64,000 nt of DNA, from contig NC_134033.1 of assembly GCF_964204645.1 (NCBI RefSeq), positions 3,492,131-3,556,130 on the forward strand, given 5' to 3'. Position numbers and translations under genes: made by a program. This stretch comes from Tubulanus polymorphus (Eukaryota > Animalia > Nemertea). The notes below the pieces were generated by a model. It worked only from the letters and a program-made list of their open reading frames with translations. It did no database searches and was not told the origin of the DNA. Every line of letters starts with the position of its first letter. The first letter of the stretch is position 1. Shown here one piece after another: positions 1 through 30,886 of the stretch.

Positions 1-29
1 AGGACCAAGGCAGATAGAGAAACTAACTG

Positions 30-1666: not shown

Positions 1667-1731
1667 AATTTCTTAGTAAAAGCAGTTGTGGAACGAGATA
1701 TTCGACATTCGTAACACGTAAAAACTTCGAG

Positions 1732-4700
1732 ATGACATCGCTCGTGAGACTGGTAATGAGGGCTGCAAGTTCGGCATCCCGACTTTCTTCTTCAACAAGT
1801 TCAATTTCTTCGACGAGGCAGTTTTCAGCAAGTGTCGCTTCGCAGAAAGAATTGAACCGGCCCCCGACTGGTAATGAAGTTTATAGAGCCGGAGGTATAG
1901 CTACTATGGCTAGATTGCCGTTACAGTCAACAGCTGAAGGTAAAAGCAAATAGAATTTCAAGCTCAAAACTAGGGAAATACGTACCAGGGCGGATCTAGG
2001 GCCGTAAATCTGAGGGGTCATCCTTATTACCGAGATGACGTAATTTACCGAGATCAACCTCGGTAAAATACGTCATCTCGGTAATAAGGATGACCGAATC
2101 TGGGTGATTGAGGGTATTCTCAGAATTCTGAGGGGCGTACCTAAAAGAAAAGGGCACTGATACAGATAACACACCGCACAAAGCCCTATGGGGGGGGGGG
2201 GGTGTATGAGGCCCGTGCCTGAAAATTTGCTCTGATTCCAGCACTGATATGAAGCCATGATTTCCTGCATTTTGAGTGACGAAATTGTGGTACATCCAAA
2301 CACTGAAGAGTTAAGAAATATTTAGAACAGAGGACAGTGCCCCGGTTATCACACTTCATCTGAGGAATAACTTTCCTTTTTTTCTGGACCCGATTTCCAA
2401 TTTTCCCCAGATCCCCGCGACGCGTCATTTTTCGTGAAGTTCCACACGAATGACGATATTTCAGAAATGTTTTATTTTCGTATTAGGTTTAGACGCTTGT
2501 TTCGTCGGAATTCCGCTCGACAGCGGCGCGTCGAACAGAGCCGGAACGCGGCACGGACCGAGGGCGATTCGCGCGGAATCATCGATGGTTCGACTCGTCA
2601 ATAACGCTACCGGTAAAAATAAAACGCTGATTTATTGTCGAAACGCCAACTGTCAAACTGTTAAATGCCCTTATTTATTGATGAAACTGATTGGCTAATA
2701 ATTAACCCTTATTCATTGACAAAATGCTGATTCATTGATGGGAAACACTAATTTTAAAATGGCGGAATAGCCACAGTCTCTGACGCGGAGAACAAACAGA
2801 TAATAAGTTTAAAATCCACACTACGTGTACAGAATTTATAAGACTAAAGCAAAGTTTATTATTTGAAAAATTGAAACCAAAACACGTAATGTTTTGGACC
2901 GCCACTGAGAGAAGATCTTCAGGCGTGTTGATTTTAAAATGCTTGTTAACTGATCGAATGCTTATTTATGATAAAGTGCCATTTTATTGATGAAGCACTA
3001 AATTTTGAAATACTCAATCAATAACTGATAATAAAATGCCAATTTATTGACTAAACCCATGTTTATTGATATAATGCAGTTTTTTTCCAATTTGTTGGTT
3101 GTTGGCAGCCATTTACCCGAATCGTCCTTTTCTTCGCTTAACCGATCTTATTCGCCGTACCGCGTATTTATTCGTCGTTTCTTCATTCAGGCGCCTCTCC
3201 GTTCGAAAGTTTACAGGTCGCCGATATCGGCGACATCACCGTCAACCCGTACAACCTGTCGAAATGCTGCGACATCATCCGCGACGCCTACGAGAAAATA
3301 TTGAACGTCGGATGTCGGCCGCTCGGTATCGGCGGCGACCACACGGTCACTTACCCGATCTTACAGGCCATGAAGGTATGGTGAATTTATGTCTAAACGC
3401 GTGAAATGAATTTCTTTGAAAATACATGTAATCAAGAACTTTGTTCAATTAACTTATTAAGTACCCTAAGACACTAATTGATTCCTCGTCTGAGGAACTA
3501 ATCTAAACCCTTAACTGACGTGGAACTAATTAAACCCTCATCTGAGGAACTCTCTAAACCCTTAACTGACGTGGAACTAATTTAACCCTCATCTGAGGAA
3601 CTGGCTAGACCCTCTGTGGAACTAATTAAACCCTCATCTGAGGAACTATCTATACACTTAACCGTGGAACTAATTAAAGCCTCATCTGAGGAAGTAACTA
3701 AACCCTTAACTGGAGAAAAAAATTGAACCCTCATCTGTCAAACTAACTAAGTTCCGTCATCTGTGGAATCGATAAGGACCTCGACTGTGGAATTATCAAG
3801 CTCTCAATTGCGGATATATTTCGATCCTCTACTAAGACTCTCAACTGTCAGGGTAATAGGACACTCGCTTGTAGAACTATCAGTTATCAAAACTCTTTAA
3901 GTCTTATAACGAAGGTTCATTCAAGAATTAAATGTTTGTCTCCTCGTCTGATCAGGATAAGTTCGGGCCGGTCGCGTTGGTTCACATCGACGCTCACAAC
4001 GACACGCAACCGTCGATCATGGGCGAGGCCGTCTGCCACAGCACGCCGGTCTACCGGGCGGTCGACGAAAAACTGATCGACGGCGCGAAAGTATTCCAAA
4101 TCGGACTGCACGCTTGGGGAAACGTATTCGACGAAGACGCCTGGGCGCGTAAACAGGTAAACAGGATTCGCTCTTTTTATTTTTAAATACAATTTTATTT
4201 TTCTCGATCGCAGGGTATACACAATCCTCGCTTGCCAGGGGTCCGGTAATGCTCCCGAACTCGCTTCCACCGGCCCCCTGGCCTCACGAAGCGTGATTTC
4301 ATTACTGGCGCTGTTGCGCATGACGTCATATATCAACACGCGACAATACTTCCGCGTTCGCTACGTGTACGCTGATTGGTCCATTTACTGGGAAATTCCA
4401 TAGATGCCTAATGTCGTTTGTAACAAGCGCTGTGATTGGTGCGACCTGATTCTGGTCGGCTAGTAACGACTCCAACGACTCGTGAGGTCAAGGGGTTCGG
4501 AGAACGGCTTTAGCAGAGTGGGTTCGAATCCCTTGACGGGTGAAGATGGGTATACACGGCAGTTTAGTTTTATAGCCAAATCGAACTACTTGAGACCAGT
4601 GAGAAGATTAAAGGCCACTTTTAAAGACTGCACCTCTTAGCCTTGCACAAGTCTAAACTTGCAACCCGCCTCGTGGGCCAGTTTCATGTGTAAGAGTGTG

Positions 4701-5885
4701 CCCTTAGTTTCTATAACAGTTTACTCGGAAGGAATCTTAACCGACGTGAATAAAGACGACTTTGTTTCGTTTTTGTCATTTTTTCTAGGGATTCCACGTG
4801 TATCCGGCGCAGGATCTGTGGCAAAAATCTTTGACTCCGCTGATGAAAGAAATCCGCGCGAAGATCGGCCCCGACACGCCGACCTATATCAGTTTCGATA
4901 TCGACGGTCTAGATCCGGCTTATGCACCGGGAACAGGTACGAGATATCGCCTAAGATTACGTTGACCTTGCCTGAAAAAAATGGCTGCTTCCATGAATCT
5001 CCCTATGACATCATGAAATAACCTCCTCCGCGCGAAAGATGGCTACATCCGTAGATCTCCCTATAACATAATCAAATAACCACTAGGTACTTCCACACAA
5101 AAGATGGCTACCTTCATAAATCCCCCAATGACCTCATCGAATGGCGTACTTATTTGGTCAACAGACCCTGCCAGAACAGTTGGCTTCAATGAATCCCCCT
5201 ATGATCTCATCGAACTATGTCTAGATACTGGCACAAAAGATGGTTGCTTCTGTAGATCCCACTACGACATCATCAAACTACGAAGTGAATTGATAGCCCA
5301 GGAGTTCGGAAAAAAGATGATTGAGTCGCCCTTTATCACCCTATGACATCAGCCTGCCTTGTAACTTAATCTATGATCAAGTTACAAAAAGATGGCTGCC
5401 GTCATAATTCCCCCTATGACATCATTAAATTGCCTAGTTATACGATGTAAAGACCCTGACCAGAAGACATAAACTCTCCAACTAATCGTGGTAATAATTC
5501 CAATTTCCTCTGCACCTGCAGGAGCTCCGGAGATCGGAGGACTGACAACGATACAAGCTTTAGAAATTCTCCGTGGTTGCCGTGGCTTGAATATCGTAGG
5601 GGGCGATGTCGTTGAGGTAAGCGTTCAAGATTTCAGTCAGCACTGAAAGGGTTAAGGGAGTCGAACTAGTTTGTGTGAGGTCCAATATTTTGTAGAAATC
5701 ATTGACTACATCATTGAAGTTCAGTTATGAATTTTCCGAAGTCAAGTGTTTTGTTGTTTCGATTATAGGTGTCTCCGCCGTACGATATGTCCGGTAATAC
5801 GGCGTTGACCGCTGCGTATTTGCTGATGGAAATGCTGTGCGTTTTCCCGGGAGTTAAATATTACGACCAGCCGCGCGAATGGTAA
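1732..5885 (+). CDS. AGMAT: Agmatinase / guanidino acid hydrolase (ureohydrolase family), copy 1
   Basis: Exons 1732-1939, 2487-2612, 3191-3375, 3956-4156, 4789-4936, 5522-5616, 5769-5885, all GT-AG and in frame. Ser/Arg-rich mitochondrial-type presequence. Motifs [50 protein letters not shown]. Confidence 0.9.
2881..2929 (-). ncRNA. Degenerate minimal hammerhead ribozyme of Penelope-like terminal-repeat type
   Basis: Minus strand reads ACACGC-CTGAAGA-TCTTCTCTCAGTGGCGGTC-CAAAACATT-ACGTGT, then AATAAA. This matches CUGANGA...GAAACGUU with G>A decay. Confidence 0.45.
3478..3790. repeat. ~48-bp degenerate minisatellite in AGMAT intron 3 (paralog at ~13800-14200)
   Basis: Repeated AAACCCTCATCTGAGGAACT...TGTGGAACTAATT units. 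Confidence 0.8.
4223..4547 (+). mobile_element. Insertion of the 1056-1666 repeat family at the exon-4b acceptor, flanked by a 10-bp direct repeat
   Basis: GGGTATACAC at 4213-4222 and 4548-4557. The body is homologous to ~1075-1383 and absent from AGMAT copy 2. Confidence 0.75.
4975..5435. repeat. ~65-bp degenerate minisatellite (AAAGATGGCT...CCCCTATGACATCA) in AGMAT intron 5; paralog at ~15830-16290
   Basis: Recurrent AAGATGGC and CCCTATGACATCA motifs. The same family occurs reverse-complemented at 21865-22310. Confidence 0.75.
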
Positions 5886-5904
5886 AACGACCGATCGGAA
5901 TGCA

Positions 5905-6245
5905 CGCCGTCTGCTATTTACGTGGCAGCCTCACTTTGGTCTGGCTGTTATTGAAATAACCAAACAAAATACACGTCTGCTATTAGCAGCCTCACTTTGG
6001 TCTGGCTCACAGGGACCTGACAAAAAAAAATTTCGGCCCCAGTATCCTAGGTACTATATATAAAAAAACTTATATAGTACCTAGGATACTGGGGTCAAAA
6101 TTTTTTTTGTCAGGCCCCTGTGGTCTGGCTGTTATTGAAATAACCAATTGAAAAACACGTCTGCTATTAGCAGCCTCGCTTTGGTCTGACTGTTATTGAA
6201 ATAACCAATTGCAATACACGTCTGCTATGAGCAGCCTCACTTTGG
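5905..6245 (+). repeat. ~61-bp tandem repeat just after the AGMAT stop codon (paralog at ~16755-17090)
   Basis: Unit CACGTCTGCTATTAGCAGCCTCACTTTGGTCTGGCTGTTATTGAAATAACCAAT... Confidence 0.85.
6008..6122. mobile_element. 115-bp foldback MITE with 8-bp TSD (hAT-like)
   Basis: Near-perfect palindrome CACAGGG...CCCTGTG. TSD GTCTGGCT at 6000-6007 and 6123-6130. Absent from copy 2. Confidence 0.85.
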
Positions 6246-7474
6246 TGGCTGATTGTTATGCCATTCCAGAAACGATGGCTGAACTCATTGAAACACCAAA
6301 ACACTTTGTAAATGGTACTTTCGTCGAATTAAATCACTAAGAAATTCGCAGGGGTGGATCTAGACAGGAGCACAAGGACAACGTGCTGCCGTCGCAATTT
6401 TCCTGTGCCCTTTTTGAAAAAAGAACGGCAATATTTTTCAGGGCACTTATTAAATTTCCTCCCGCAACTAAGAAAAACAGTTGTCCAAAATTATGCTTTT
6501 ATTCTCATAAATATCCCTCAGGTGCCTAGAAATTGTATGAAAATGCATTGAAATCTCAAACAATTTTCCAGACCTCTGTTTTCGGTGTGTGGCTACTTGA
6601 CCAGCTCCTTTTCATTTCTTTCTGCTCCTGTCAAAGTCTGCCTCTGGATCCGTCCTTGGGTCCTCTTCATCGTCTGCCCCTGATTCGTTTTTCCGCAGTT
6701 TGTAGAGTCTGAAACCGTATCGGTTTCTGAAAAATGAACCAAACTGTTGGTTAAGATTGTTATTCATCAATTCAGCTGAAGGATTGAAAAAAGATTTCTT
6801 TTTTTATTTCTAAAGATTATAATTTCTTGCCGATTTGTGACGTGCCAGTGTGCTAAAACAAAACCTGCTTTACCGGGATATACGTATTAAATCTTACATT
6901 ACTTTTTTATTTTAAACAAGATTTTATATATATTCTTGCATCTGCTGATTATTATTTACATATTTACACGTCTTGTATGGATGAATTTTATCCGAATTTT
7001 GGAATGAACAAAAAAAAAATTTCAAGAAAAGTGAAAAAATATAATATGGTAGTAAAATTCGTGCTTACTGACAGATTTTCTTGCCACTGGATTTTTAATT
7101 CGGTGAAATATTCAGCCCTCGCACTAGCGACTGAGAAGGGATAATTCAATACATGTAATTCCAAAGTTATTAGAGCGAGGTTCAACGGCAATAATATCCA
7201 GCGTAGATGAAAATCGGGACGGAACCAGGGTTTCCATGACTTAAAAACTACTTAAAACTGAAATTGCATCCGAAGGTGCATGGAATTTTTTAACTTGAGC
7301 AAAATTTCAGAAAATCCTATGCATTAAAAAACTTTCAGAAATGGACAATCAGATAGATATATAGGTACATGAAGAATTTATACAGCAAACTACGCCGAAA
7401 TTGGTGCAGTTGGGACCAGGATTTGTTAATAAGTAAATGACATGAAGAAAAATTCTTATTCACTCTAAACAATA

Positions 7475-9630
7475 CGAATAAAAGCACTTTGAAACATAAC
7501 AAACGTTATTTACAACATAGGCCCTACTATTGACACACTACCGGATGGATCTTTATACATCTAGAACTTATTTGATAAATTTAGCCAGTTTAAAAGTTGG
7601 ATTTTTTAAAACATCAAGATTCCGAAAGGTATTTGAATTTAGGTAGCTCTCACGGAATACGGTAAGTAATTTACAGTCAAAAATGAAATGTAGTTCGTCG
7701 CCTAAAATGTTACAACTGGGACATAATCTATCGGTTCTCGGTAGATGGAGATATGACAATTTATTTACAGGTATGAGATAAGACCCAATCCTGAACTGTA
7801 ATAAACTGGTCACTAAGTCGTCATCAAGCCAATTTATATAGTTTTCAAATTTAATATCATTCTTATATTGTCTAAAATTAATGTATAACGGGTTATTATT
7901 TAGCCTAAATTCTGTCTCTTGCACATGCTGATCACGGATTATACGGTGTAATTGTTTTGGAGAAGTCCCAGAGTTTACCATAAATTGTAGTTCCCAGATA
8001 TACGAAAGGCCACAGTCATCAAAAGTCTTCTTAATAAATAACAGTCAGGGGCTCTAAAACCTATCATTCAGATAAAAATTTAAAGATATCTTATAGAGAA
8101 TTGAACTAAGTTTACTTTGTTTGCACTCAATCGTTATGACCCAAAAATTAATCATTCTACGTTTTACGTTAATATACATAGGATAACGTCCTAACTCTGC
8201 TAATGAATACGAATATTTATTACACTCCAACCATTTCCATGGTATATGGAGGAAAAGAAACAGTATTTACAATTATTTACAAAAACAGTAGATAAGAGCA
8301 CTTTGAAACATAACAAACGTTATATACAACATGCTATTTACACACACTACCGGAGGGATCTATATACATCCAGACCTAATTTGATAAATTTAGCAAGTTT
8401 AAAAGTTGGATTTTTTAAAACATCAAGATTCCGAAAGGTATTTGAATTTAGGTAGCTTTCACGGAATACGGTAAGTAATTTACAGTCAAAAATGAAATGT
8501 AGTTCGTCGCCTAAAACGTTACAGGTGGGGCATAATCTATCGGTTCTCGGTAGATGGAGATTTGACAATTTATTTACAGGTAGGAGATAAGACCCAATCC
8601 TGAACTGGAATAAGCTGGTCACTAAGTCGTCATCAAGCCGATTTATATAGTTTTCAAATTTGATATCCTTCTTATATTGTCTAAAATTAATGTATAACGG
8701 GTTATTATTTAGCCTAAATTCTGTCTCTTGCACATGCTGATCACGGAGTAAACGGTGTAATTGTTTTGGAGAAGTCCTAGAGTTTACCATAGATTGTTGT
8801 GTCCATATATACGAAAGGCCACAGTCATCAAAAGTCTTCTTAATAAATAACAGCCAGGGGCTCTTAAACCTATCATTCAGATATAAATTATAAGATATCT
8901 TATAGAGAATTGAACTAAGTTTACTTTGTTTGCACTCTATCGTTTTGACCCAAAAATTAATCATTCTACGCTTTACGCTTATATACATAGGATAACGTCC
9001 TAACTCCGCTAATACTTGAAGGTTATGGGAATATTTTGTAACTTTCATGATAATTTTACAAAATAAAAAGTGGAGGTTTTCTAATAAGTCAAGGTTTTCA
9101 TATCCCCAGACTTCGCAACCGTACAACGCGATAGGAGCGACGCACATGTCAAATAGTTTAAACATTACATCTACTGGAAGTTTCAAACGTCTGCCCTTTT
9201 GAATAATAGAATACATAGCTTTCATAGCTTTATCATAGAGAAATTTTTTTGCTTTAGCGAAACTACCGTTCCAATTGAATTTCACTCCGAGATACACATA
9301 ATCCTCAACTAACTCTAACTCCTGATTACCGAACATGAATTTTGAAATACGCTTAATCCTACTTTTACTTCGAGCGAAGACTAATATTTTAGTTTTATCA
9401 ACATTCACCGTGAGGCCGTTGTCGGCGCAATATTCAAATAATGTATCCAAATGTGACTGGAGAGATTCCTCATCTTCAGCAAGAATGACTGTGTCATCCG
9501 CATAAAGGATAATGAATAAGTTAAGTAAAGTCCCTAGTTCTGGGTCACAATTCACATTAAGCTTTTCAATATACGACAAAGTTGGTTTACCGCGCGTAGC
9601 AAAAAAGTCTTATACTTGAAGGTTATGAGG
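7475..9630 (-). mobile_element. Two nested 5'-truncated RTE-X-like LINE copies (outer 7475-8204 plus 9612-9630; inner 8205-9611)
   Basis: ORF 8347-9579 carries LFIILYADDTV, NVDKTKIL, YVYLGV and the C-terminal CxxC..DELHFIFDC. The inner copy has its own (TATTCG)n tail at 8205. The empty site is seen in unit B at ~19420-19440. Confidence 0.88.
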
Positions 9631-9859
9631 ACATCTGGTGGTATGTAAGTGCACTAATATCTGCATTCCGTTTTAGAAGTTTTTCGATTGTAGCGAAGAA
9701 GAGTTTTTTTAAAGTCTTCAAAATTTTCAATCCGGTTTAAGTCCAGTGCCCGGTTTAACAAAAAGGTTTAACCCAAAAAACTATTTAATTTATTTGTCTA
9801 TGTTTAATTGAAATAGGCCTTAAATCCTATTGAGCAGGGTTCGGTTCCTCAGTTGAGAC

Positions 9860-11145
9860 CTTCAATCGGCCTTGAAACTGTTCGAGCATCTAATCCAACC
9901 AATCCTAGTGTACTGTTGTGAAGTATGGGGAGCTTTTCATTTCGACGAAAGAAACCCAATCAACTTTTACGCTCTATGCGAAGTAACCCCAGCTGAAAGA
10001 GTCAATCTAAACTTTGTTGATCTTTTGGGGGTTGGTAAACAAACATCAAATGCAGCAGCCAGAGGAGAAATTGGTCATTTTTCCATTCTGGTAAAAATTT
10101 TCCCTCTAATTATAAAATATTGGTTAAGAGTTTGCGATTCTGACAGTGCTATGGCCTTATTCGCAAGTCATACATAATTAAACTGTCTACAAACGAACAC
10201 TGATGACAACTGGGGAAATTGTGTTCGATCTCTTTTGTACCATTTCCACCTAAAAATCACGTGGGAAAACCAAGGGAGTACCGCATCTGCCAATAAAGTG
10301 GCCTTATCTCTAAGCAAACGAGCAATGCACTTGTACTCATCACAATCGTATGATTTTGTGAATGACTCTGTCTCCAACCCTAAGCTGCGGAAAATTTAAA
10401 CTATTCAAATCAAATTTTTGTTTGGAGAACTACCTGGTTACTAATCGTTATAGTCGGAAATGAATTTTCAAAATTAAGAGTCAGTAATCACAAGTTACGA
10501 ATTGAAACGGATCGTCATAAAAAAAACCAAAAATCCTGATAGAAAATAGAGAGTATGCCTCCTCTGCAAAAATGGTTCGATTGAGGATGACGCCGCATTT
10601 CCTCCTAGATTGTTCCAAACTTGGGCAAAAAAGGCATTCCTTTTTTCCCAAATCTCTGACTTCACTATATTACAGAGTTTATCATATGATGACCAGTTTA
10701 AATTCATCATGTCATGTACAAAATGACACTGAAGTGGGTAAGCTGGTTTGCAACTTTATTGCCTCCATGGTCGAGGAAAGAACTTTTTCTGATGTCTGCT
10801 TCACCGTGACTTAGGTGTATATCGTGTGGCCTTGCCCGATCGGTTTGGCTGCCACTCGATATCCTCCTGTGTCTGGGTTGAAGTAGTCATCGTTATTTGA
10901 AATAACTGGTTATGTTGACCTGTAAGATTATGTATATGCATTGTAGATTGTATTTTCAAGTTTAAAAAGTGACCGGCGGGGAGCGGTGTTCTTTGTAAAT
11001 AGCTCTAATTTTTCTCTCTCCTATTATGTTATGTTATCATTTGTCGGTGTCTCTTTGTATTAATATTTCATTGCCGTGTATGTCCTAATTTTGTAATTTT
11101 GTCATTATCCGGATGCAATAGATTTTGAATTTAAATTGAATTTGC
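9860..11145 (+). mobile_element. Highly decayed LINE fragment (RT C-terminal region) between the duplication units
   Basis: LFEHLIQPILVYCCEVWG, TSNAAARGEIG and frameshifted SKLRVSNH..RIETD / CxxC..IEDD.HFLLDC remnants. TTGAAT-like tail at ~11125-11145. Confidence 0.7.
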
Positions 11146-11507
11146 TCCAATTCACTCAATTCAATTTTTTATATTGCACCGCGCTCTACTCACGTGCCAG
11201 GGCTTTCCACAGTTTACCTTAATTGGCATAACGCTTGCTAATGAATATCGTACTTAATAGCCTAACCGAGCAGAAAAAAAGCTACAATAATGTACGAATT
11301 AAAGCTATATGTGAAAAATACGGTTAATAAGTACACCCGAAGATGGCGCCACTGTACGGTCTTTCGGTTTAAGCCGGCTGACGCCTCAAAAACTTCTGGC
11401 CCCGTTTGAGTTTGATTTTTAGCGTCTAAAACGCCGAATTTCTCAGTAAAAGCAGATGTTGAACGTAGACGAGGCATTCGACATTCGTAATACGTAAAAA
11501 CTTCGCG

Positions 11508-14500
11508 ATGACATCGCTCGTGAGACTGGTAATGAGGGCTGCAAGTTCGGCATCCCGTCTTTCTTCAACAAGTTCAATTTCTTCGACGAGGCAGTTTTCA
11601 GCAAGTGTCGCTTCGCAGAAAGAATTGAACCGGCCCCCGACTGGTAATGAAGTTTATAGAGCCGGAGGTATAGCTACTATGGCTAGATTGCCGTTACAGT
11701 CAACAGCTGAAGGTAAAAGCTATCATGATATGAAGCCATTTCCTGCATTTTGAGTGATGGAATTGTTTTGCGAGCAAAATTTATTGAGGGCGCTTAGAAA
11801 TTTTGAGGGTCTTCCAGAAGACCTTTAAGACCCCCTAGATCCGTGCCTGAAATACCGTCACTATCCACGTCACCCAGTCCTGGAACTGGTTGTATCCACA
11901 GCACCGATGTTCTATGATCCTAGTCACTAATGTCTATTTCAACCTGACTTGAGAGCATTCCAGGTGGCCTAGCTCAGTCAGTTTTGGTAGTACATACCTG
12001 ATAAAGGTCTTAGTAGGACCAGAAAGGACGAGCAGTCTACCTAAATCATCATTTTTTAATCCATTTGAAACTGTATTGAAGGATATCCAAAAAGACTTCA
12101 CTGAAAGGGGTTCAATGAAGAGAAGTGACTCCATGATTTGAAAGTTTAACAATATGTTTCCATGCCTACGTACCAAACTTCAGTTGGTAGGCATAGAGAC
12201 ATATTGTTAAACTTTCAAATCATGGAGTCTCTTTTCTCTCAGGAACCCCTCTCAATGCAGATTTTTTGGATATTCTTCAATACAGTTTCAAATGGATTAA
12301 AAAATGATGATTTAGGTCAGCTGCCAATGCATTCTGGTCCTAATAAGACTTTTATCAGGTATGTACCACCAAAACTGACTGAGCTAGGCCACCCTGTATG
12401 CTCTCAAGTCGGGTTGAAATAGACATTAGTGTACCTATCCCTGTGGTCCATCAAAACACTGAAAGAGTTAAGGAAATATTTAGAACAGAGGACAGCGGCC
12501 CGGTTATCACTCTTCATGCTCATCTGAGGAATAACTTTCCTTTTTTTCTGGACCCGATTTCCAATTTTCCCCAGATCCCCGCGACGCGTCATTTTTCGTG
12601 AAGTTCCACACGAATGACGATATTTCAGAAATGTTTTATTTTCGTATTAGGTTTAGACGCTTGTTTCGTCGGAATTCCGCTCGACTGCGGGGCGTCGAAC
12701 AGAGCCGGAACGCGGCACGGACCGAGGGCGATTCGCGCTGAATCATCGATGGTTCGACTCGTCAATAATGCTACCGGTAAAAATAAAATGCTGATTTATT
12801 GTTGAAATGCCAACTGTTAACCCTTTCAGTGCGTCTACACTGCAGTGCGGTGTACGAATCTGTGATGGATATTGCTAGTACACCGCACTGCGGTGTATTG
12901 ATATAATTAGTAATTACTTCTATTGAAAGATGGCAGCACCTGTTAGACATAGTGAAATACTAGTAACTAACGATACACTGCACCGCGGTGTAGACACACT
13001 ATAGTGGTATTCCCGTTATTCAACACACTAGGGTGGAATTTTTCAGAATTATCAAATTATCTTCAGCACTATAGGGTATTAACTAGTCAGCACTGAAAGG
13101 GTTAACCCTTTCAGTGCGTCTATACCGCAGTGCGGTGTATGAATCGGTGATGGATTTTGCTAGTTCCCCGTACTGTGGTGTATTGGTGTAATTAGTTTTT
13201 ATCTCTATTGAAAGATGGCAGCACCTGTCAAACATAGTGAAATATTAGTAACTAACGATACACTGCACCGTGACGAGACGCACCATAGTGGTATTCCCGT
13301 TATTCAACACACTAGGGTGGAATTTTTCAAAATTTTCAAATTATCTCCAGCACTATAGGGTATTGATTAGACATCACTGAAAGGGTTAAACCCATGTTTA
13401 TTGATATAATGCAGTTTTTTTCCAATTTGTTGGTTGTTGGCAGCCATTTACCCGAATCGTCCTTTTCTTCGCTTAACCGATCTTTTTCGCTGTACCGCGT
13501 ATTTATTCGTCGTTTCAGGCGCCTCTCCGTTCGAAAGTTTACAGGTCGCCGATATCGGCGACATCACCGTCAACCCGTACAACCTGCCGAAATGCTGCGA
13601 CATCATCCGCGACGCCTACGAGAAAATATTGAACGTCGGATGTCGGCCGCTCGGTATCGGCGGCGACCACACGGTCACTTACCCGATCTTACAGGCCATG
13701 AAGGTATGGTGAATTTATGTCTAAACGCGTGAAATGGATTTCTTTGAAAATACATGTAAAAGAACTTTGTTCGATTAATTTATTAAGGTACTACTCTTAG
13801 GCACTAATTGAATCCTCGTCTGAGGAACTATCTAAACCGTTACTGTAGAACTACGTAATTAAACCCTCATCTGAGGATTTAGCTTTACCCTCTATGGAAC
13901 TAATTAAACAAAACCCTCATCTGAGAGGAACTATCTAAACCCTCAACTGTGAAACTAATTAAACCCTCATCTGAAGAACTAGTTAGACCCTTAACTGTAG
14001 AACTAATTAAACCCTCATCTGAGGAACTGGCTAGACCCTTTGTGGAACTAATATTAAACCCTCATTTGAGGAACCAACTGAGCCCTCAACTGTAGAACTA
14101 TTAATTAAACCCTCCTCTGAGGAACTAACTAAACCCTCGCCTGTGCAAATGATTAGACCCTTAACTGTCGAATCATTAAGCCCTCAACTGCGGATCTATC
14201 TCAACTGTGAATCTTTAAAAAAGTGGAACTGTCAAGGTAATTGGACCCTTACCTGTAGCACTATCGGTTATCAAAACTCTTTAAGTCTTATAACAAAGGT
14301 TCATTCAAAAATTAAATGTTTGTCTCCTCGTCTGATCAGGATAAGTTCGGGCCGGTCGCGTTGGTTCACATCGACGCTCACAACGACACGCAACCGTCAA
14401 TCATGGGCGAGGCCGTCTGCCACAGCACGCCGGTCTACCGGGCGGTCGACGAAAAACTGATCGACGGCGCGAAAGTATTCCAAATCGGACTGCGCGCTTG

Positions 14501-16735
14501 GGGAAACGTATTCGACGAAGACGCCTGGGCGCGTAAACAGGTAAACGGAATTTTTTTCTTTTCTTAAATTCGATTCTATTTTTCTTGATCGCAGGTCAAA
14601 CACGGCGCTGTGGCGTTGATACACGTCGACGCCCACAACGACACGCAGCCCGATATGATGGGCGAACGCGTCGCGCACGGCACGCCGTTCTACCGCGCCG
14701 TCGACGAGCGACTGGTCGACTGTTCGAAGGTGTTTCAGATCGGATTGCGCGGCTGGATGAACAGCATGCAGGACGAATCCTGGGGCAAAGATCAGGTATT
14801 TTCGATGAATTGCGCGCAAGTTTTCTTAGAGAAGGGATACTTGCCCCAGGATGTCGGGGTGCAGTTATAATTTCAGTTCAGAAACTTAAGTCTTAATTTT
14901 AAGACTGGTCTTAAATTGTTAGATTCATTGTGGAACCAAAATAAGTTTAGACTGGTTTTAAGTTATAGTTAGATTGGTTATGGAACCAAAATGAGCTTAG
15001 ACTGGTCTGAAGTTGTTAGATTGGCTATAGAACCAAAATGAGCTTAGACTGGTCTTGAGTTGTTAGATTGGTTATGGAACCAAAATGAGCTTGGACTGGA
15101 TGTTAGTTATAAGTTTGGCTGTAGAACCAAAACGAGCTTAGACTGGTCTTTGATTAGCTTAGATTTGTTATAGAACCGACATGAGCTTCAGTGGAATTTG
15201 AAAAAATCTGAAAAATCATGAAAATATGTGTGAAATATTCAAGAAAAGTATCCCTCAAAATAATTTGGTCCTCTTATGCCGCACACCGTGGAGCTCAGAA
15301 TTGTGTGAAAAAATGTGAAAATTCTGAAGTTCATCAATCTAACGCCTTGAATTTTGTTATGCCTTTATTCACCAGCAAATTGTAAGGATATGGAAGAATT
15401 TGAAAAGTAAAGATCACGTTAGTTTTATAGCAAATCGAAATACTTGAGACAAGTCATAAGATTAAAGACCACTTTTAAAGACTGCACATCTTAGCCTTGT
15501 ACAAGTTTAAACTTGCAACCCACCACGTGGGCCAGTTTCATGTGTAAGAGCGTGCCCTTAGTTTCTATATTAGTCAACTCGGAAGGAATCTTAACCGACG
15601 TGAATTAAGGCGGGTTGATTTCGTTTTTGTCATTTTTCTAGGGATTCCACGTGTATCCGGCGCAGGATCTGTGGCACAAATCTTTGACTCCGCTGATGAA
15701 AGAAATCCGCGCGAAGATCGGCCCCGACACGCCCACCTATATCAGTTTCGATATCGACGGTCTAGATCCGGCTTACGCACCGGGAACAGGTACGAGATAT
15801 CGCCTAAGATTACGTTGACCTTGCCTGAAAAAAAAATCGCTTTCCATGAAACTCCCTATGACATCATGAAATAACCTCTTCCTCACAAAAGATGGCTACC
15901 TCCGTAGATCTCCGTTTGACATAATCAAATAACCACTAGGTACTTCCACACAAAAGATGGCGACCTTCATAAATCCCCCAATGACCTCATTGAATGGCAT
16001 TGGTCTATAGACCCTGCCAAAATAGTTGGCTTCAATGAATCCCCCTATGATCTCACCAAACTACGTCTAGCTACTTGCACAAAAGATGGTTGCCTTCGTA
16101 AATCCCCCTACGACACCATCAAACTACGAAGTGAATTGATATCCCAGGAGTTCGGGAAAAAAAAGATGATTGAGTCGCCCTTAATCACCCTATGACATCA
16201 CCATGCCTTGTGATTTGATTTATGTATGGATCATGCCAAAAAAGATGGCTGTCATGTTTCCCCCTATGACATCATTAAATTGCCTGGTTATATTATGTAT
16301 AGCCCCTGGAGACAGAAACACTCCAACTAATCGTGGTAATAATTCCTATTTCCTCTGCAGGAACTCCGGAGATCGGAGGACTGACAACGATACAAGCTTT
16401 AGAAATTCTCCGTGGTTGCCGTGGCTTGAACATCGTGGGGGGCGATGTCGTTGAGGTAAGCGTTCAGGATTTCAGTGGGCACTGAAAGGGTTAAGGGGAG
16501 TCAAACTAATTTGAAGTGGGTGCGGTCCAATATTTTGTAGAAATCATTGACTGTCCTACATCATTGAGGCTCAGTTATGAATTTTCCGAAGTCAAGTGTT
16601 TTGTTGTTTCGATTATAGGTGTCTCCGCCGTACGATACGTCCGGTAATACGGCGTTGACCGCTGCGTATTTGCTGATGGAAATGCTGTGCGTTTTCCCAG
16701 GAGTTAAATATTACGACCAGCCGCGTGAATGGTAA
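11508..16735 (+). CDS. AGMAT: Agmatinase / guanidino acid hydrolase, copy 2, with alternative exons 4a/4b
   Basis: Exons 11508-11712, 12651-12776, 13519-13703, 14340-14540 (4a) or 14595-14795 (4b), 15642-15789, 16361-16455, 16619-16735. All ureohydrolase metal-ligand motifs are intact, including GLR and GTGTP. Confidence 0.93.
11925..12431. mobile_element. ~507-bp foldback MITE with ~250-bp inverted arms; partial copies at ~27548-27830 and ~31416-31740
   Basis: CACTAATGTCTATTTCAACC...GGTTGAAATAGACATTAGTG. The arms are reverse complements over most of their length. Confidence 0.85.
12821..13385. mobile_element. Two head-to-tail ~280-bp piggyBac-like MITEs sharing TTAA sites
   Basis: TTAA|CCCTTTCAGTG...CACTGAAAGGG|TTAA at 12821-13101 and 13106-13385. 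Family remnants at ~18625-18850, ~19945-20110, ~24775-24966 and 36764-37049. Confidence 0.85.
14595..14795 (+). CDS. AGMAT: Duplicated alternative exon 4b of AGMAT copy 2 (DAHND active-site exon)
   Basis: Boundaries gcag|GTC...CAG|gtatt. 201 nt and phase 0/0, like 4a. Encodes [67 protein letters not shown]. Confidence 0.85.
14900..15190. repeat. 47-bp minisatellite (TTAGATTGGTTATAGAACCAAAATGAGCTTAGACTGGTCTT)
   Basis: Same family as 25745-26280 (reverse) and as the internal repeat of the MITE at 38804-38944. Confidence 0.8.
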
Positions 16736-17970
16736 AACGACCGATCGGAATGCACACCGTCGTCTGCTATGTACGTGGCAGCCTCACTTTATAAAGGTCT
16801 GGCTGTTATTGAAATCACCAATCAAAATACACGTCTGCTATTAGCAGCCTCACTTTGGTCTGGTCATTATGAAGATAACCAATCAAAAATTCACGTCTGC
16901 TATGAGCAGCCTCACTTTGGTGGCTGATTTTATATGCTATTTACGTGGCAGCCTCACTTAAAAGGTCGGGCTGTTATTGAAATAACCAATTGAAAACACG
17001 TCTGCTATTAGCAGCCTCGCTTTGGTCTGGCTGTTATTGAAATAACCAATTGAAAAAACACGTCTGCTATTAGCAGCCTCACTTAGGTGGGTGATTTTCG
17101 TATCGAGTTCATAGACCATTCCAGAAACGATGGCTGAACTCATCACTTTGAAATCATGTGATCACATTTGAAATCATGAAATCAAGTGACTCATCACTGA
17201 ACCGAACTTTGTAAATAGTGCTTTTGTCGAATCAAATCACTAAGAAATTCGCAGGGGTGGATCTAGACAGGAGCACAAGGAGAACGTGCGGCTGTCGCAA
17301 TTTTCCTGTGCCCTTTTTGAAAATAGAACAGCAATATTTTTCAGGGCACTAGAAATTGTACTTCTTCTTGAAAGATCTTGAAAGTGCCTAGAAATTGTAT
17401 GAAAATGCATTGAAATCTCAAACAATTTTCCAGACCTCTGTTTTCGGTGTGTGGCTACTTGACCAGCTCCTTTTCATTTCTTACTGCTCCTGTCAAAGTC
17501 CTTGATTTCATATTCTGGTTCAATTCGAAATAATGATGTCATGATTCGAATCTGATGATGTAATATGGGTATTTTTAGGGGGTAGCCATCTTTTCTGGAA
17601 GGGTGTTGTTTAAGTCGTCCTCTCAGGGTTATAAAATTATCACCACTTTAGATAATTTATTTACTTTGAATATCTTTTTAACTGATGATAAATCATCATG
17701 TTTCCGCAGTTTTTAGAGTCTGAAACTGTATCGGTTTCTGAAAAAGGAACCAAACTGTCGGCGTGTTATCGCATAGATTAAAATTGTTATTCGTCAATTC
17801 AGCTGAAGGGTTGAAAAAAATTTATTTTTTGATTTCTGAAGATCAAAATATCTTGTTGATTTGTGACGGGCCAGTGCGCTAAAATGTAACCAGCTTTACC
17901 GAGATATGCGTATTATATGTTATATTACCTTTTAATTTTAAACAAGATTTTATATATATTCTTGCATCTG

Positions 17971-18068
17971 GGTCCAGTTCCACAGTTCCGAGTTAAGATT
18001 TAACTCTGAGTTAAATGAACTAACTTTAACTCAGAGTTAACTCTAACCCACAACTGTGGAACTGGATC
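17971..18068. mobile_element. 98-bp palindromic MITE with 3-bp CWG target duplication
   Basis: CTG|GGTCCAGTTCCACAGTT...AACTGTGGAACTGGATC|CAG. Empty site in unit A at ~6940. Confidence 0.75.
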
Positions 18069-20388
18069 CAGCTGATTATTATTTACATATTTATACGTCT
18101 TGTATGGATGATTTTTTATCCGAATTTTGGAATGACGAAAAATAAAATTTCAAGGTATTAAAATTCGTGCTTACTGACAGATTTTCTTGCTCCTGGAATT
18201 TAAACTCGGTGAAATATTCAGCCCTTGCACTAACGACTGAGAAGGGATAATTCTATACATGTAGTTCCAAAGTTATTAGAGCGAGGTTCAACAGCAATAA
18301 TATCCAGCGTAGATGAAAATCCGGACGGAACCAGGGTTTCCATGACTTCTTGATGCCTTAAAAACTCCTTATAACTGAAATTGCATCCGAAGGTGCATGA
18401 AATTCCTTTAACTTGAGCAAAATGTCAGATATTCCTTTACATTAAAAAAACTTTCAGAAATGGACAATCAGATAGATATATAGGTACATGTACTTACCGG
18501 GGTATACAGAATTTTTACAGCTAACTACGCCGAAATCGGTGCAGTTGGGACCAGGATTTGTTAGTGAATTAGAAACCGATTTTCGGTAGCTTAAGGGTAG
18601 GTATTTACTTACAAAACCGCTGAATTAACACTGCGGTGTATTGATGTAATTAGTTATTACCAATTATCTCTTGAAAGATAGCAGCACCTGTCAAACAGTG
18701 AACTATTAGTAACTAACGATAGACCGTGCCGCGGTGTAGATGCACTATAGTGGTATTCCTGTTATTCAACACACTAGGGTTGGGAATTTTTCAGAATTTT
18801 CAAATTATCTTCAGCACTATAGGGTATTAATTAGCCAGCACTGAAAGGGTTAAAGAGTTTTTTACCGAGATAAACAGTTGTGATTTAGTGAAGAGTCGAC
18901 TGTGATTGGGATATGAAAGGGATGCAGACGCTTTTTCGGAATTTGAAATTTTCTCCTTTAAAACTCTACCTTATAAAGTGACGCAGACGCTTCTCCACCA
19001 AGATTGATTCTTAGGGACCCAGGGAACTGATCCGACTTAAGCGAGTCCGACAAGCTAGGATTTTGACTGTATCTAAGACAACGAACCGATAAAAACTTTT
19101 TGACTCGTAATTTTTATTGAAAATACCGGTAGTTATTATAATTTCACTGATGAAAATAATAAACCCGAAACTAGCGACATTTCCCGCCAGACTCCGATAA
19201 AACATCTACATGTATAATGAATAATCCTTTATTTTATGATATTTTTTTTCCATTTCGTGAAAAAAAATCAAAATTTAGATATGCAAGTATTTCGAATATT
19301 TGGGCTATTTTTCGGTTGAAATGTTGCGAAATCGCGTTATAGACAGGCGCAAAAAGAAATTAAGATTCACGCAGATCAAAGTAAATGATGCGACGAAAAA
19401 TTCTTGTTCACTCTAAACAATAACGGTGGTGACGACGACATCTGGTGGTATGTAAGTGCACTAATATCTGCATTCCGCCTTAGAAGTTTTTCGATTGTAG
19501 CGAAAAAAACTTTTTGTGAAGTCTTCAAAATTCTCAATCCGGTTTAAGTCCAGTGCCCAGTTTAACAAAAAGGTTTAACCCCAAAAAACCATTTAATTTA
19601 TTTGTTTATGTTAAATCGAAATAGGCCTTAAATCCTATTGAGCAGGGTTCGGTTCCTCAGTTGTGACGAGTTAAAGTTAAAACTCTGGGCTAAATTCAGT
19701 TCATGTTCGATATTTAGTCAAATTTTAACTCAAGAGCTGTAGAACTGCATCCTGACTTTCTTCTCCAAAGAAGTTTAACTCCTTTTTAAATGGATTTGAA
19801 ATTTCTTCATCAATTCGGTTTTTATCTTTGAAGTCATTTTACTACAGTAATCTTAACTCGGATAAAACTACAGTAATCTTAACTCGGGACCATCACAACC
19901 TAAAACCTTGGGTCGAGGGCTTTTGCGAAAAAACTTTCCGTTAACCTTTTCAGTATCTACACCGCAGTGCGGTGTATAAATCAGTGATAGATTTTGGTAG
20001 TGCAGTGTATTGATGTAATTAGTAATTATCTCTCTTGAAAAATTGCAGCACCTGTCAAACACAGTGGAATACTAGTAACTAATGATACACCGCGCCACAG
20101 TGTAGACGTAAAACTTTTTTGCGAAATCGGACCTTCCTCGTGAAATGAAAAGTTACGGAAAACCTCAGATGTGCAATAATTTTTTTCTCGAAAATTCAAG
20201 TCAAGCGACGCAGAAATTTGGACGGTTTTTGAAGAGTATATAATATGACTTATACATATATCAGTTTTCTGTACATTACACACATAATATATATATATAT
20301 GTTTTTTTTCGATATATCTGCGTGGTCTATCACAGCAACGCGGAATCCCCGCGGGAAAACCCCCTACCCCTCGTTACAAACGCAGCCC

Positions 20389-23300
20389 TCAACAACTCAT
20401 ATCTTTCAGTATATCTTCGTATTTGATGACGGTGATTTGGTTTTTCGTTTCGGTGCCCGACCATTCGTCGGCACGCGCCCCGGTCAACATGAGTGGCGGC
20501 GCCATCGATACGGGGTTCTCGCGCCAGTTCAACTGCTGTAATAACGCGCAGTAGTCGACGACACCGTTGTTTGATTCGGCCAGTCTGAAATTGGAAGTGA
20601 AGGAAAAATTACGATTTGATTTTCGCCGAATTCAAAATCCAGTGTAAAACTAGGCACAGGTCCTTGGAATCTTGAGACAAGACACCAGGGTGCGATCTAA
20701 GCACTTGTCGGATTGCCCGCGACAAATATATACTCATCAGGGCAAGTAGGTAATCATTATCACTTGTCCACCGGGCTAGTGCAATTTTACGTCACAAAAT
20801 CCGGTGTAAAACTAGGCACAGGTCCGGGGAATCTTGAGACAAGACCCCAGGGTGCGATCTAAGCACTTGTCCGATTGCCCGCGACAAGTATATTCTCATC
20901 AGGGCAAGTAGGTCATCATTATCACTTGTCCGCCGGGCTAGTGCAATTTTACGTCACAAAATACAGTGTAAAACTAGGCACAGGTCCTTGGAATCTTGAG
21001 ACAAGACACCAGGGCGCGATCTAAGCACTTATCCCATTGCCCGCGACAAGTATATTCTCATCAGGGAAAGTAGGTAATCATTATCACTTGTCTACCGGGC
21101 TAGTGCAATTTTATGTCACAAAGCTTTTTCCGATACAACAGATGATAGTGCCACCAATTGGACTGCCTGTGCAGGGCAAGTAGTTTTTGGAGGGGGCAAG
21201 CGAAATTTCGGATATGCTTGCCCCCCCCCCCCCCCGGGCGAGTGGCTTTCATTCTATAGATCGGATCCCGAGACACCCGTGTATTTTGTCTCGAGTTGCG
21301 CTTGTGAATAAGTTGTTTACTTTTAATGTCTTATATAGAATTTTACAAATTTCCCTCGCATAATAGATCAGGATAAGTTGTCGAATAAACACTATAATCC
21401 GTGTATAGGCCTACTGTAGATAAATGATGAAATCCCACACTTCGAATTAAATTATAAGGTATAATTCATTATTTTGAAACCATAACGTTTCGGCTGTTGA
21501 CTAACAGATCAGGATAAGTTTCGCATATAGAATGCATCCTCTATGAAGCCGTACTTATTAGTAAATCCTATAGATATGGGAAGTTTCAACCAAGTTGACG
21601 GAGGCATTTTCCTCGAGGAGTTTCAGATATTTTATCTCAGTATATATCGACCAGGATTATCTATAAGAGCTGGACCTAGTTCGAGATGAGACTTACTTCG
21701 TTAGTAGTATTCTAAGTATGTCGTCCGGTACGGGTACATGTAGAGCTCTGAACGCCGTTCTCACTAGTTCAGGTGTCAGTGATCCAGCTCTGTAATCAGA
21801 AATATAAAGATATATTCAGTTATTTCATTCACAAAAGAAGCCCAAATGAAAAAAAAGCAAATTTGATCTTATGATTTCATAGGGGGATTTATGGAGGCAA
21901 GACGTATTTTCGACATGATTCTGTAGATCAAACCACTTGTAGACAATTTTATGATGTCATAGGGGGAATTATAAAGGGAGCTATATTCTCTGGAAGTTTC
22001 AGTGGAGATCAAACCACTAGCAATTAAGTGATGTCATAAGGGGAATAATGAAGGCAGCTATCTGTAGGCAAGTTTGATGTTTTAGGGGGATTCATGGTGG
22101 TAGCCATCTTTTCTTGAAGAACAATTTGATGCTGTCATAGGGTGATACACGGAAGTATCCATTTATGGCTAATTCATGGATGCAGCCATGTATTGTGAAA
22201 TGGGTCTAAGCTGCGACGTACTATGAATTGGTCCGATTTGAAGATGTCATAGGGTGAATCATGGAAGCAGTTTATGAAAATGGTCCAATTTGATGATGTC
22301 ATAGGGGGAATCGAGCGTGTGTACATACGTACCTGTCTTTATCGTGGTGTATGAAATTCTCGAGCAGACTCTGGAATCCCTCGAAGTTGTCTTTCCTCAG
22401 GTGCTCGTGCACGACGGCCAGCAACGAGACGATCTCCATCGGCCGGTCGGTCGCCTGGTCGCTGTAGTGCCGCGCGAGCGTCATGATCTCCTGGTGCGTG
22501 ATGCCCGGCACGAGTTGAACCATCAACGAGTAGAACTGGTCGTAGCCGACGACGCCGCGGCCGTCGGCGTCGTTACGTCGGAAGAACGACGCGATCTCGT
22601 CCTCTTTGCCCTTGATCAGTTCGCCTAGACGTTTCATCACGTGTTTCACGCTCGCTTTCGGAAACTGAACGAAAAAATTTTATTTTCAAATTTTCGCAAA
22701 CATTTCGTGTAGATTTTCTATAGACTATGACTCGAAAAAATTTTATTAAAAATTATGAAATAATTTGCCTTTCGAAGGAAATTATGAAAGGCAAATTATT
22801 TGAATTTTTACAAAAATTCTACTACTCATGATTTGAAAACTGATTGCAGGTGATCGAATAGATTTTTATTTTCAAATTTTTGAAGAGATCACGCGTATAT
22901 TCTAGTAGACCCCGACTCACAAAATTTAAAAGGGAATTCCGAATTCAAAATTCAATCGAATTAATTTTTCCAAGGGATCATTCATTTATTACGTACGCAT
23001 AAAATTTGAATTTTTCAACCCCCCTACCCCCCTCTGTACGCAAAATCGGCAATTCTTTTGTATATGTTCAGCATAAAAGTACACAATTGTACTGACCCCG
23101 CCCCCTCCCCTAATGCGTACGTAATAAATGAATGACCCCCGAGGAAAAACTAAACTCAAATCTTAGTTACTAGGCTCTAGAGAACGGAGATTTTTTCGAA
23201 AAAACAAACTTACGCTGTCAGGGAACATTTCCATGAATGCGAACGCGTACTCGTCGGCGTCGATCAGAATGAATTTATGGCAGTTAAATTCGACATTGGC

Positions 23301-26300
23301 GCCGACGAAGAAATCGGTCGCCGTGTAAAATTCGGCCGGTTGCGTGCTGTATCGCGGCTGATTCGGTTTCTTCATCTTTCCTCGTTCGAGGAACTTTCCG
23401 CCGATTATACCTGCGAAAAACGGGCGATTGAAATTGTGACTAATTAGCTTAATTAGCGCGTTAATTTCTTTTAGCGACCCGGAATCCAGCAGTTTGACTC
23501 AGGGACCTGACCCCCGACCTGCGGAGTATCAGACATTTTAACGAATTTAAACGGGCAGACGGATGATTGAAATTGGGATTCATTAGTTTAATTAGGGAAT
23601 TAGGGATCCAGTGCTCCTAATTTGTCGTTTAATTTTGACTCAGGGAACTGAGAACAGGGACTATAGGGCAAGCAAATTTTAATTTTCTTGTTCCCCCGAC
23701 CTGCGGAGTACCAGACATATTAGCCAATTCAAAATTTCTTTCCCCCAAAACTCACTAAGCGTATCTTAGGACATTTCTGCAGATTCGAGGTTTATTTTCA
23801 CCTCAACCCACTGACAACACTACATTAATTCACCTTGGTGCGATGTATTAGCAAGTGTAGATGGGTTAAACGACTAAAAAGGTTAAATGATATACCTGAA
23901 TTCCTGACGGGCGGTTCGAACACTTGGACCGTATCGTCGGAAAGGAAGTACGAAATGATAAATCTTCGATCGGCGTCGATCGGCTTGTCGGTGTCCATAC
24001 GCGCGAGGAACCGCATGACGTTGCTGTCCAAACCGTGTCGGTCCATCTGCATGAATTTGATGAAATCGCGTTTCGGCGGTTTCGGAATCAGGCCCTCCGT
24101 CGAGCAGAGCGAGTCCTCCTCGGAGCCGAACCCGTTGTACGGTGGCGTCTGCTTGGTGACCTTCGTACCGCCGCCGCGGCGGTATTCGATCGGCTTGAAC
24201 TCTTCTACAAAAAAAATTGCGCATCTTGAGGGAAAAATTGAAAATATTGATTAAGAAAAATGTTTCAATAGGGCACTCCTAATGTGGCAAACAAGGACCC
24301 ACTGGATTTCGCTAGTGAAAGTATTAGTGAACATATCCGCCAGGTGTCGCTAACGTGCAGTAGGATATCAACTACTGCAGCAATAGAGATTTCCATTTGG
24401 GACAAGTGAGGATCCACTAGGTGTCGCTAGTGTGAATTGGGATATCATCTACTGCGGCCAAATGATTCTATTTGTGCAAGTGAACATCCACCAGGTGTCC
24501 CTTGTGTAGGTAGGTGATTTTTGCGTCGTAGAATATTTACCGATTCCGTATTTAGTTCTGAAGTATTCCCGAGTGAAGGTGTCGCAGTCGCAGATTTTTA
24601 TTTTCCGACCCAAAACGTTCAATTCGACTCCGATCATCAGATCACTGTCTGTGTAGAAATCAGTGTGAACCGCTCCGGTCTACAAGGTGAAAATAGAATA
24701 TTTGAGAAACGAAGGATACATTCAGGATTATAGATACAATTTTATTAATCAAAATCCGGACATCAAGGTACACCGCTTTAGTGCGTCTACACTGCGGCGC
24801 AGTGTATCGTAAGTAACTAATATTTCACTATGTTTAGGTGCTGTCATCTTTCAATAGAGATAGAAACTATGAATCAATAATAACATCCATACACCGTGGT
24901 GCGATGTACTAGCAAAGTCCATCACTGATTCATACACCGCGCTGCGGTGTAGACACACTGAAAGGGTTAACTTAAAAAGTTGAATCTTTAAATCCCAACT
25001 GTGAAACTCTACCCCCGGAGTCTGTGCCTTCTTTAGCGAATAACGTGCCTACCTTTAAACTATCTAGGATGTACCGTCCGCCTTGTCCCATCGGACCGAA
25101 CACGTTCAGGACGGTGCGATTAGTCTGAACGCCCGGTTGTTTCAGATTTAGCACGTGTTTCGGTAATTTGCCGCGTCTGACAAACATCGGCGCCGCGTCG
25201 CGCCCCGAATTCGGGTAAATTACCTGAAATTTAAAGCGACAAATGATTAAAATTCTTATAAAATATATTTGACCAGCTTTTTCCCTGACTATTCCCTGAT
25301 ATGCACGATGTTTTCCCTGACTTGTAAGTTGTTTTCCCTGACTTGATTTGCTAAGAATCCGATCAATTAACGCAGTCAAATATGTAAAACATAGACTGAA
25401 ACTATTTGATTTTACGCGCGATCTAGAAATCTCTACAAATTTCCCTGATTTTAAGCTTCTTTTTTTCACAAAATCCCCATAGCGTAGGCTATGTTATGAG
25501 AAACCCTAGAGCGCGACTCGTACCTCTCTGATTTCGATGGTGTCGTCTGCCAGGAAATAATGTAGGACCATTTCGCGAAGGTCGCCGAACATGGAATCGG
25601 TGTCGTCCCAAATACAGTAGAATCTCAACACGAGACGATCATAATTGAGGAACTGTTTCAACGTGTCGTGTTTCTCGTACGGACGCAACGGCTGCATACT
25701 CTCATCCATCTGAAATGAGAAGATGACAATTATTACTTAAGATCAGTCCGAGCTCATTTCAGTTTCATAACCAATCTAACATCTTAAGACCAGTCTAAGC
25801 TCATTTTGGTTCTATAACCAATCTAACAACTTTAGACCAGTCTAAACTCATTTTGGTTCTATAATCAATCTAACAACTTAAGACCAGTCTTAAGTCATTT
25901 TAGTTCTATAACCAATCTCCCAAATTGTAGACCAGTCTAAGATCATTTTGGCTCTATACCAAGTCTAACAACTTAAGACCAGTCTAAGATCATTTTGGTT
26001 CTATAGCTAATCTAACAACTTAAGACCAGTCTTAAGCTTATTTTGGTTCTATAACCAATCTAACAATTTGAGACCAGCCTAAGCTCATTTTGGTTCTATA
26101 ACCAATCTAACAACTTAAGACCAGTCTAAGCTCATTTTGGTTCTGTAGTCAATCAAACAACTTAAGACCAGTCTAAGCTCATTTTGGTTCTGTAGTCAAT
26201 CAAACAACTCTAGACCAGTCTTGGCTCATTTTGGTTCTATAAACCAATCTAAGCAATCTAACAAAGTGAAGACCAGTCTGACTGTGCACAATCAAGCCTT

Positions 26301-29127: not shown

Positions 29128-29149
29128 GATGATGACCTGTTTGTTTAAC

Positions 29150-29320
29150 TAGCGAGCTACTGTACTGTCTATCTCTGAAGCAGCCCGATTCTCGGAGAAA
29201 AAGGCTGGCGGGCGGTGTTTGTGTGTCACGATTAAAGCTGTTCCAACCAAAACAGGACTTGATCTTTACACGGTTGCCTAGGACGCCGGTGCTACTTTCT
29301 CGCGTCACTAAGGAGAACTA
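29150..29320. promoter_or_regulatory. Putative ciliary-gene promoter elements upstream of EFHC2 (RFX X-box-like and forkhead-like sites)
   Basis: GTTGCCTAGGAC at 29273-29284, GTCACTAAGGAGAAC at ~29304 and TGTTTGTTT at ~29138. RFX/FOXJ1 control of motile-cilia genes is established; the motif matches here are imperfect. Confidence 0.45.
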
Positions 29321-30834: not shown

Positions 30835-30886
30835 GGAGGAACGATTACGAATTTCCTCGACGCTTTTTCCCCCGAAATCGTTGATA

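Follow-up and report, generated by a model that had tools for sequence, protein, structure and literature searches.

What is gained when an enzyme gene carries two interchangeable versions of one exon? We addressed this question for an AGMAT-like ureohydrolase gene of the nemertean Tubulanus polymorphus, in which two adjacent exons, 4a and 4b, encode the same part of the protein. The gene lies in a 64,000-nucleotide (nt) stretch of contig NC_134033.1 (assembly GCF_964204645.1, positions 3,492,131 to 3,556,130), here called the window. On balance, we favor the reading that the two exons are spliced exclusively and give enzymes unlike in substrate preference or kinetics. Taken separately, either-or splicing in the worm is highly probable; given such splicing, its steric enforcement is likely, and with similar confidence the isoforms can be expected to diverge functionally, in the substrates they prefer or in their kinetics. 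In the proposed scheme, the symmetric exon 4 would have been duplicated in tandem long ago within the worm lineage, each mRNA would connect exon 3 to exon 5 through either 4a or 4b, and the 54-nt intron between 4a and 4b would be too short for the worm spliceosome, which could not join them. The two 358-amino-acid (aa) isoforms would have in common five-sixths of the chain, all the metal ligands, and an Arg contributed by the neighboring subunit, and would diverge in the two loops, A and B, and in the residues on either side of the catalytic His. Exon 4b would specify a near-canonical enzyme and 4a one with a retuned pocket, which would prefer other guanidino acids or act on them with other kinetics.

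The properties that the initial annotation had ascribed to the pair were confirmed when the sequence was read again: both exons are 201 nt long, open, in phase 0/0, and flanked by AG and GT; they are identical at 41 of 67 aa (and at 138 of 201 nt), a 54-nt spacer separates them, and both contain DAHND and the loop sequences quoted for them. Adjacent, homologous, equal in length and phase, and coding for the same protein segment, they are tandem-duplicate exons. No intron shorter than 54 nt turned up in the window, in a look that was not exhaustive and with an ab initio intron finder that is insensitive. The exons are not chance open reading frames (ORFs), because both match the Pseudomonas aeruginosa guanidinobutyrase GbuA (E values of 1.5e-13 and 4.4e-18) and lie between ordinary exons 3 and 5. 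Their nucleotide divergence of 31% rules out an assembly artifact. The gene as a whole is complete, with seven exons on the forward strand, a coding sequence spanning 11508-16735, and a product of 358 aa in each model with a single exon 4; the start of exon 3, misplaced earlier, is at 13519.

The earlier proposal that both exons are old and selected held as well. Between 4a and 4b the synonymous divergence (dS) is 1.04 and the ratio of nonsynonymous to synonymous divergence (dN/dS) is 0.29; third-position GC is 0.75 and 0.82 in the exons versus 0.28-0.37 in the introns, and the splice sites are strong at both. In a neutral simulation that counts substitutions only and leaves out indels, the frame, the splice ends, and 7 invariant residues survived in 39 of 20,000 runs at 0.25 substitutions per site and in 0 of 20,000 at 0.5. 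We therefore regard both copies as intact and under long-standing purifying selection. This constraint, like the strong splice sites, speaks against the idea that a single copy is in use and the other is a recently silenced relic, with 4a either decaying or handed over to a second gene; we consider that improbable, even if the branch leading to 4a in the exon tree is the longer one (0.52 versus 0.18 for 4b) and a gene copy carrying only 4a could have taken over its product.

Such a copy exists. A whole-gene tandem duplicate with 4a as its only exon 4 lies upstream (copy 1; Table 1) and had been overlooked. It differs from the gene with both exons (copy 2) by 6 replacement and 10 silent changes in 349 codons, the exons being ~98% and the introns roughly 80-94% alike, and the homology ends ~65 nt upstream of the ATG. 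Exon 4a differs by only 2 nt between the gene copies, and it is copy 1, not copy 2, that bears the damaging R224H; both observations argue against a silenced 4a in copy 2. R224H and a second change in copy 1, T290A, fall at otherwise invariant sites, at which all 17 homologues compared have the residue of copy 2. Judged by these changes, copy 1 looks like a decaying duplicate, although it could also be an unmerged haplotype. It retains a short intron of 57 nt after 4a, and since it also keeps the acceptor and a remnant of 4b, the exon pair is older than the gene duplication. Because 4a is present in both genes, counts of splice junctions for 4a would be confounded; the genes can be told apart by single-nucleotide differences at 4a positions 60 and 155, exon 3 position 69, and exon 5 position 36. 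In the whole assembly (268 Mb, 77 contigs), no further AGMAT-like gene and no third exon 4 were found beyond the two tandem copies.

Into the 4b remnant of copy 1 an interspersed repeat of high copy number, 325 nt long, has been inserted, accompanied by a direct repeat of 10 nt. The same 315- to 325-nt element occurs at 1070-1385 and 4224-4548; it is young (at least 40 copies at 89-97% identity, >1,100 candidates) and has a tRNA B-box-like motif near one end, resembling a short interspersed element. Its size and copy number rule out a long terminal repeat.

How the two exons might be kept apart is suggested by the length of the spacer. Steric exclusion sets in when the donor and the branch point are less than ~50 nt apart (PMC5740500; PMC7969005), and in a 54-nt intron any branch point lies at most ~40 nt from the donor. 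Eight constitutive short introns resolved elsewhere in the genome, in myosin and ureohydrolase genes, measure 84, 88, 89, 90, 90, 98, 99, and ~117 nt, and the gaps between kinase exon matches imply a floor of ~78 nt by a rough hand estimate. The spacer thus agrees with steric exclusion (54 nt against at least 84 nt), with the branch point placed by intron length. Since the ~50-nt limit was derived from vertebrates, and since the intron sample is small, the contrast is support, not proof. Nonsense-mediated decay is not the lock, because the translated gene models stay open with 4a, 4b, both, or neither, so that co-inclusion and skipping remain in frame. Docking-selector pairing was ruled out too: the search for candidate RNA-pairing elements found no complementary stretch of >9 nt. 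Known RNA families were likewise not found at positions 1-20000 of the window.

The fold of the protein bears on the same point. In a model of the amphioxus orthologue (predicted local distance difference test score [pLDDT], 89.6), exon 4 corresponds to the core-sheet strands 174-179 and 209-219. Because the exon holds two core beta-strands, its skipping or doubling should break the fold, and a protein with zero or two copies would not be expected to fold properly. Mutually exclusive use of 4a and 4b is thus well supported, if indirectly, by the selection on both exons, the two core strands, the 54-nt intron, and the annotation of amphioxus isoforms described below. Joining of both exons into a 425-aa protein with a doubled segment would keep the frame, one amphioxus gene model has that form, and introns of 54 nt are spliced in some invertebrates. 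We nevertheless think it very improbable, since two core strands and a metal motif would be doubled, RefSeq separates the amphioxus isoforms, and the 54-nt intron is far shorter than the others measured.

We then considered what the exchanged segment does. In Escherichia coli agmatinase, DAHxD is followed by loop A, which reaches to the catalytic His163, and a GxR motif precedes loop B (PMC8125230). Mapped accordingly, the two divergent segments, which had been taken for loops of the substrate pocket, are the A and B loops, and each lies within exon 4. A role in recognition is reported for GbuA Met161, GpuA Tyr157, and arginase Asn130 (PMC10833137); the first two align with exon position 21, occupied by Ile in 4a and by Met in 4b. 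In a comparison with 308 homologous segments, 4b proved near the consensus (Met21, HGTPF), and 4a had rare residues around the catalytic His and both loops (Ile21, Cys27, Ser29, Val32, and Ala53). All the invariant residues are retained in both exons; the worm Asn in DAHxD and the Trp and Asn in loop B are rare among the homologues.

These data also bear on a reading in which both exons are used exclusively but act on the same substrates, differing in stability, in the pH or metal they prefer, in the assembly of hexamers, or in timing across tissues, or with 4a contributing to mixed hexamers as a subunit that is weak or regulatory. In its favor, the 26 aa differences are scattered over the entire exon rather than the pocket alone, next to the catalytic His 4a departs from a Gly and a Phe that are near-invariant, both isoforms share the acid-binding Arg of the neighboring subunit, and loop mutants of E. 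coli agmatinase mostly lose activity (PMC8125230). We hold it to be rather unlikely, because the rare changes of 4a cluster at positions 21, 27, 29, 32, and 53, in or beside the two loops, position 21 has been tested in three ureohydrolases as a site of recognition (PMC10833137), and one pocket residue suffices to shift the preference of the human guanidino acid hydrolase GDAH (PMC9772407).

As to the identity of the enzyme, the best match of both exons among solved structures is GbuA, and the top fold match of the amphioxus orthologue model is GbuA as well (3NIO). Exon searches and that model alike place the protein closer to GbuA/GDAH than to SpeB or arginase, and the GGDH, DxHxD, and DxD metal motifs and the catalytic His, all invariant columns, are present in both isoform models. 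The best explanation is that the gene is the worm AGMAT/GDAH orthologue, a di-manganese ureohydrolase most like guanidinobutyrase. The human orthologue hydrolyzes taurocyamine and guanidinobutyrate, not agmatine, with the help of an Arg from the neighboring subunit and with a Km of >50 mM for its best substrates (PMC9772407). Arg104, encoded by exon 2, appears to be the equivalent of human R105 and GbuA R72, and by analogy with the human enzyme (PMC9772407) it points to hydrolysis of guanidino acids rather than agmatine. The label agmatinase given initially is therefore probably wrong, and GDAH would be the better name. The presequence encoded by exon 1 is probably mitochondrial, judging by its composition and by human GDAH (PMC9772407). 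The use of several phosphagen bases by marine worms, offered earlier as a rationale for the pair, found no support here: the substrates of human GDAH are not phosphagens, and for that enzyme Sinn et al. argue against the link (PMC9772407), which is speculation.

Comparison with other animals showed that the worm is not alone. Branchiostoma lanceolatum has two 201-nt copies of exon 4, and in three assemblies, of B. floridae, B. lanceolatum, and a hybrid, RefSeq lists 349-aa isoforms X1 and X2 whose differences are confined to residues 169-234 (XP_035693584.1/XP_035693585.1; XP_066266478.1/XP_066266479.1). The exon, its length and phase, and the tandem arrangement are those of the worm, and the 3' copy has Met21 and Tyr33, as does worm 4b. 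In contrast, the amphioxus copies are 298 nt apart, hence not simply subject to steric exclusion, are identical at 51 of 67 positions, and include one canonical copy, which the worm lacks. The intron that follows amphioxus 4a is conserved over its first 55 nt (B. lanceolatum 8432-8490 versus B. belcheri 7370-7430), while the remainder varies (298 versus 2,239 nt); the conserved part is a candidate distant branch point or regulatory element. A predicted protein of a third animal, UPI00078A53A7, contains three consecutive copies of exon 4, the exon structure being deduced from the protein. A single copy is present in Mytilus, where an additional intron divides the exon, in Saccostrea, Homarus, and the tick Haemaphysalis, and in Nematostella, which lacks an intron before the exon. 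Another animal, from ENA, has clusters of whole-gene paralogues that diverge in exon 4 as well, which gives the favored reading parallel support. A retrotransposon sits in the intron directly after AGMAT exon 4 in Nematostella (11513-17709) and in an animal from ENA (10240-16774).

In an exon tree based on 60 columns only, worm 4a and 4b were sisters (support 99/98). A single clade of the 3' copies of the worm, amphioxus, and UPI00078A53A7 was rejected (approximately unbiased [AU] test, P = 0.02), whereas the test did not reject a grouping of the two worm exons with 4b of amphioxus (P = 0.26). With the worm copies sisters and a shared 3' exon rejected, exon 4 was likely duplicated repeatedly, separately in the worm, amphioxus, and the third animal, and the findings are most simply read as a symmetric exon having been duplicated more than once, although gene conversion acting on an older shared pair could mimic such separate origins and the sister pairing of the worm exons. 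Tyr33 was discarded as a marker of an ancestral 3' exon, being found also in the single-copy tick and other genes and opposed by the AU test.

Several observations weigh against exclusive splicing into two functionally distinct enzymes. The intron comparison draws on a small sample, ~17 short introns; the RefSeq amphioxus isoforms are automated predictions, and model CAH1244902.1 joins both exons. Some gene copies can do without the pair, since 4b is missing from worm copy 1 and cut short in one B. belcheri assembly. Ser29 and Val32 of exon 4a stand in place of a Gly and a Phe present in 99% and 97% of the 308 homologues, a sign that its activity could be reduced, and loop swaps between arginase and agmatinase cut activity without switching the substrate (PMC8125230).

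Duplicated either-or exons are already well known in enzymes, PKM and ketohexokinase A/C among them, and the splicing phenomenon itself is ordinary. The closest parallels are OGDH 4a/4b (PMC7969005) and ATE1 7a/7b (PMC7797038), in which one equal-length duplicated exon enters each mRNA and alters the properties of the enzyme. The OGDH lock, a donor-to-branch-point distance of less than ~50 nt, would be comparable to that proposed for the worm; the latter would rely on a very short intron, versus a distant branch point in the known enzyme cases. Unlike in those cases, the exchanged part here holds metal ligands and the catalytic His. Human GDAH/AGMAT and P. aeruginosa GbuA and GpuA (ureohydrolases, PF00491) have the fold, metal motifs, and exon content of the worm protein, but preference varies through the R105G polymorphism in humans and through separate genes in bacteria, and the annotated vertebrate AGMAT proteins examined have a single exon 4, unlike the worm. 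The initial statement that nothing of the kind had been described for AGMAT stands for the literature searched, in which neither mutually exclusive exons nor amphioxus were linked with agmatinase or AGMAT, but not for databases, given the amphioxus pair in RefSeq.

Its recurrence, and its bearing on the physiological substrate of animal AGMAT/GDAH, add to the interest of the exon pair. Designed chimeras failed to reveal what loops A and B select (PMC8125230); natural isoform pairs differing only in the loop exon are ready-made controlled swaps. The recurrent exon duplications, and whole-gene clusters diverging at the same place, suggest that marine invertebrates need more than one version of the pocket. 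Bolder, and to us doubtful, is the combined proposition that the loop-bearing exon was duplicated independently in at least three invertebrate lineages, that splicing switches guanidino substrates, and that worm 4a serves a substrate preferred by no characterized ureohydrolase.

Table 1. Parts of the two AGMAT gene copies, in window coordinates
Feature	Position	Strand	Remarks
Copy 1, gene	1732-5885	+	whole-gene tandem duplicate, open frame
Copy 1, exons 1-3	1732-1939, 2487-2612, 3191-3375	+	
Copy 1, exon 4 (4a only)	3956-4156	+	
Copy 1, exon 4b scar	4214-4560	.	acceptor and ~12 nt of 4b remain, rest deleted
Copy 1, exons 5-7	4789-4936, 5522-5616, 5769-5885	+	
Copy 2, exon 1	11508-11712	+	ATG; Ser/Arg-rich presequence; aligns with amphioxus orthologue residues 6-65
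Copy 2, exon 2	12651-12776	+	carries Arg104, common to both isoforms
Copy 2, exon 3	13519-13703	+	GGDH motif; phase-0 end
Copy 2, exon 4a	14340-14540	+	DAHND, loop A, catalytic His, loop B; more derived copy
Copy 2, intron between 4a and 4b	14541-14594	+	54 nt; 57-nt counterpart retained in copy 1
Copy 2, exon 4b	14595-14795	+	DAHND, loop A, catalytic His, loop B; nearer family consensus
Copy 2, exon 5	15642-15789	+	SFDIDGLD metal motif
Copy 2, exon 6	16361-16455	+	
Copy 2, exon 7	16619-16735	+	through stop codon

Elsewhere in the genome (contig C4, 4125126-4126944), one myosin-head segment (profile 112-152) is matched four times in tandem, probably by a cluster of mutually exclusive exons belonging to a gene for myosin heavy chain. 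In the rest of the window, a multi-exon gene on the reverse strand (20311-31050) has DM10-like and EF-hand-like segments and is of the EFHC type by ORF reading. Two 8-kb segments (34869-43363 and 50136-58487), 96-98% identical, are a recent or an assembly duplicate; they include the 3' part of a large LDLa/LRR/7TM receptor ORF, upstream of which lie CUB and C-type lectin-like pieces (40944-47180, reverse strand). At 59135-62519, a Harbinger/PIF-like transposase ORF on the forward strand faces a YqaJ-type exonuclease and SWIM-like ORF on the reverse strand, which by ORF reading make up a probable DNA transposon.

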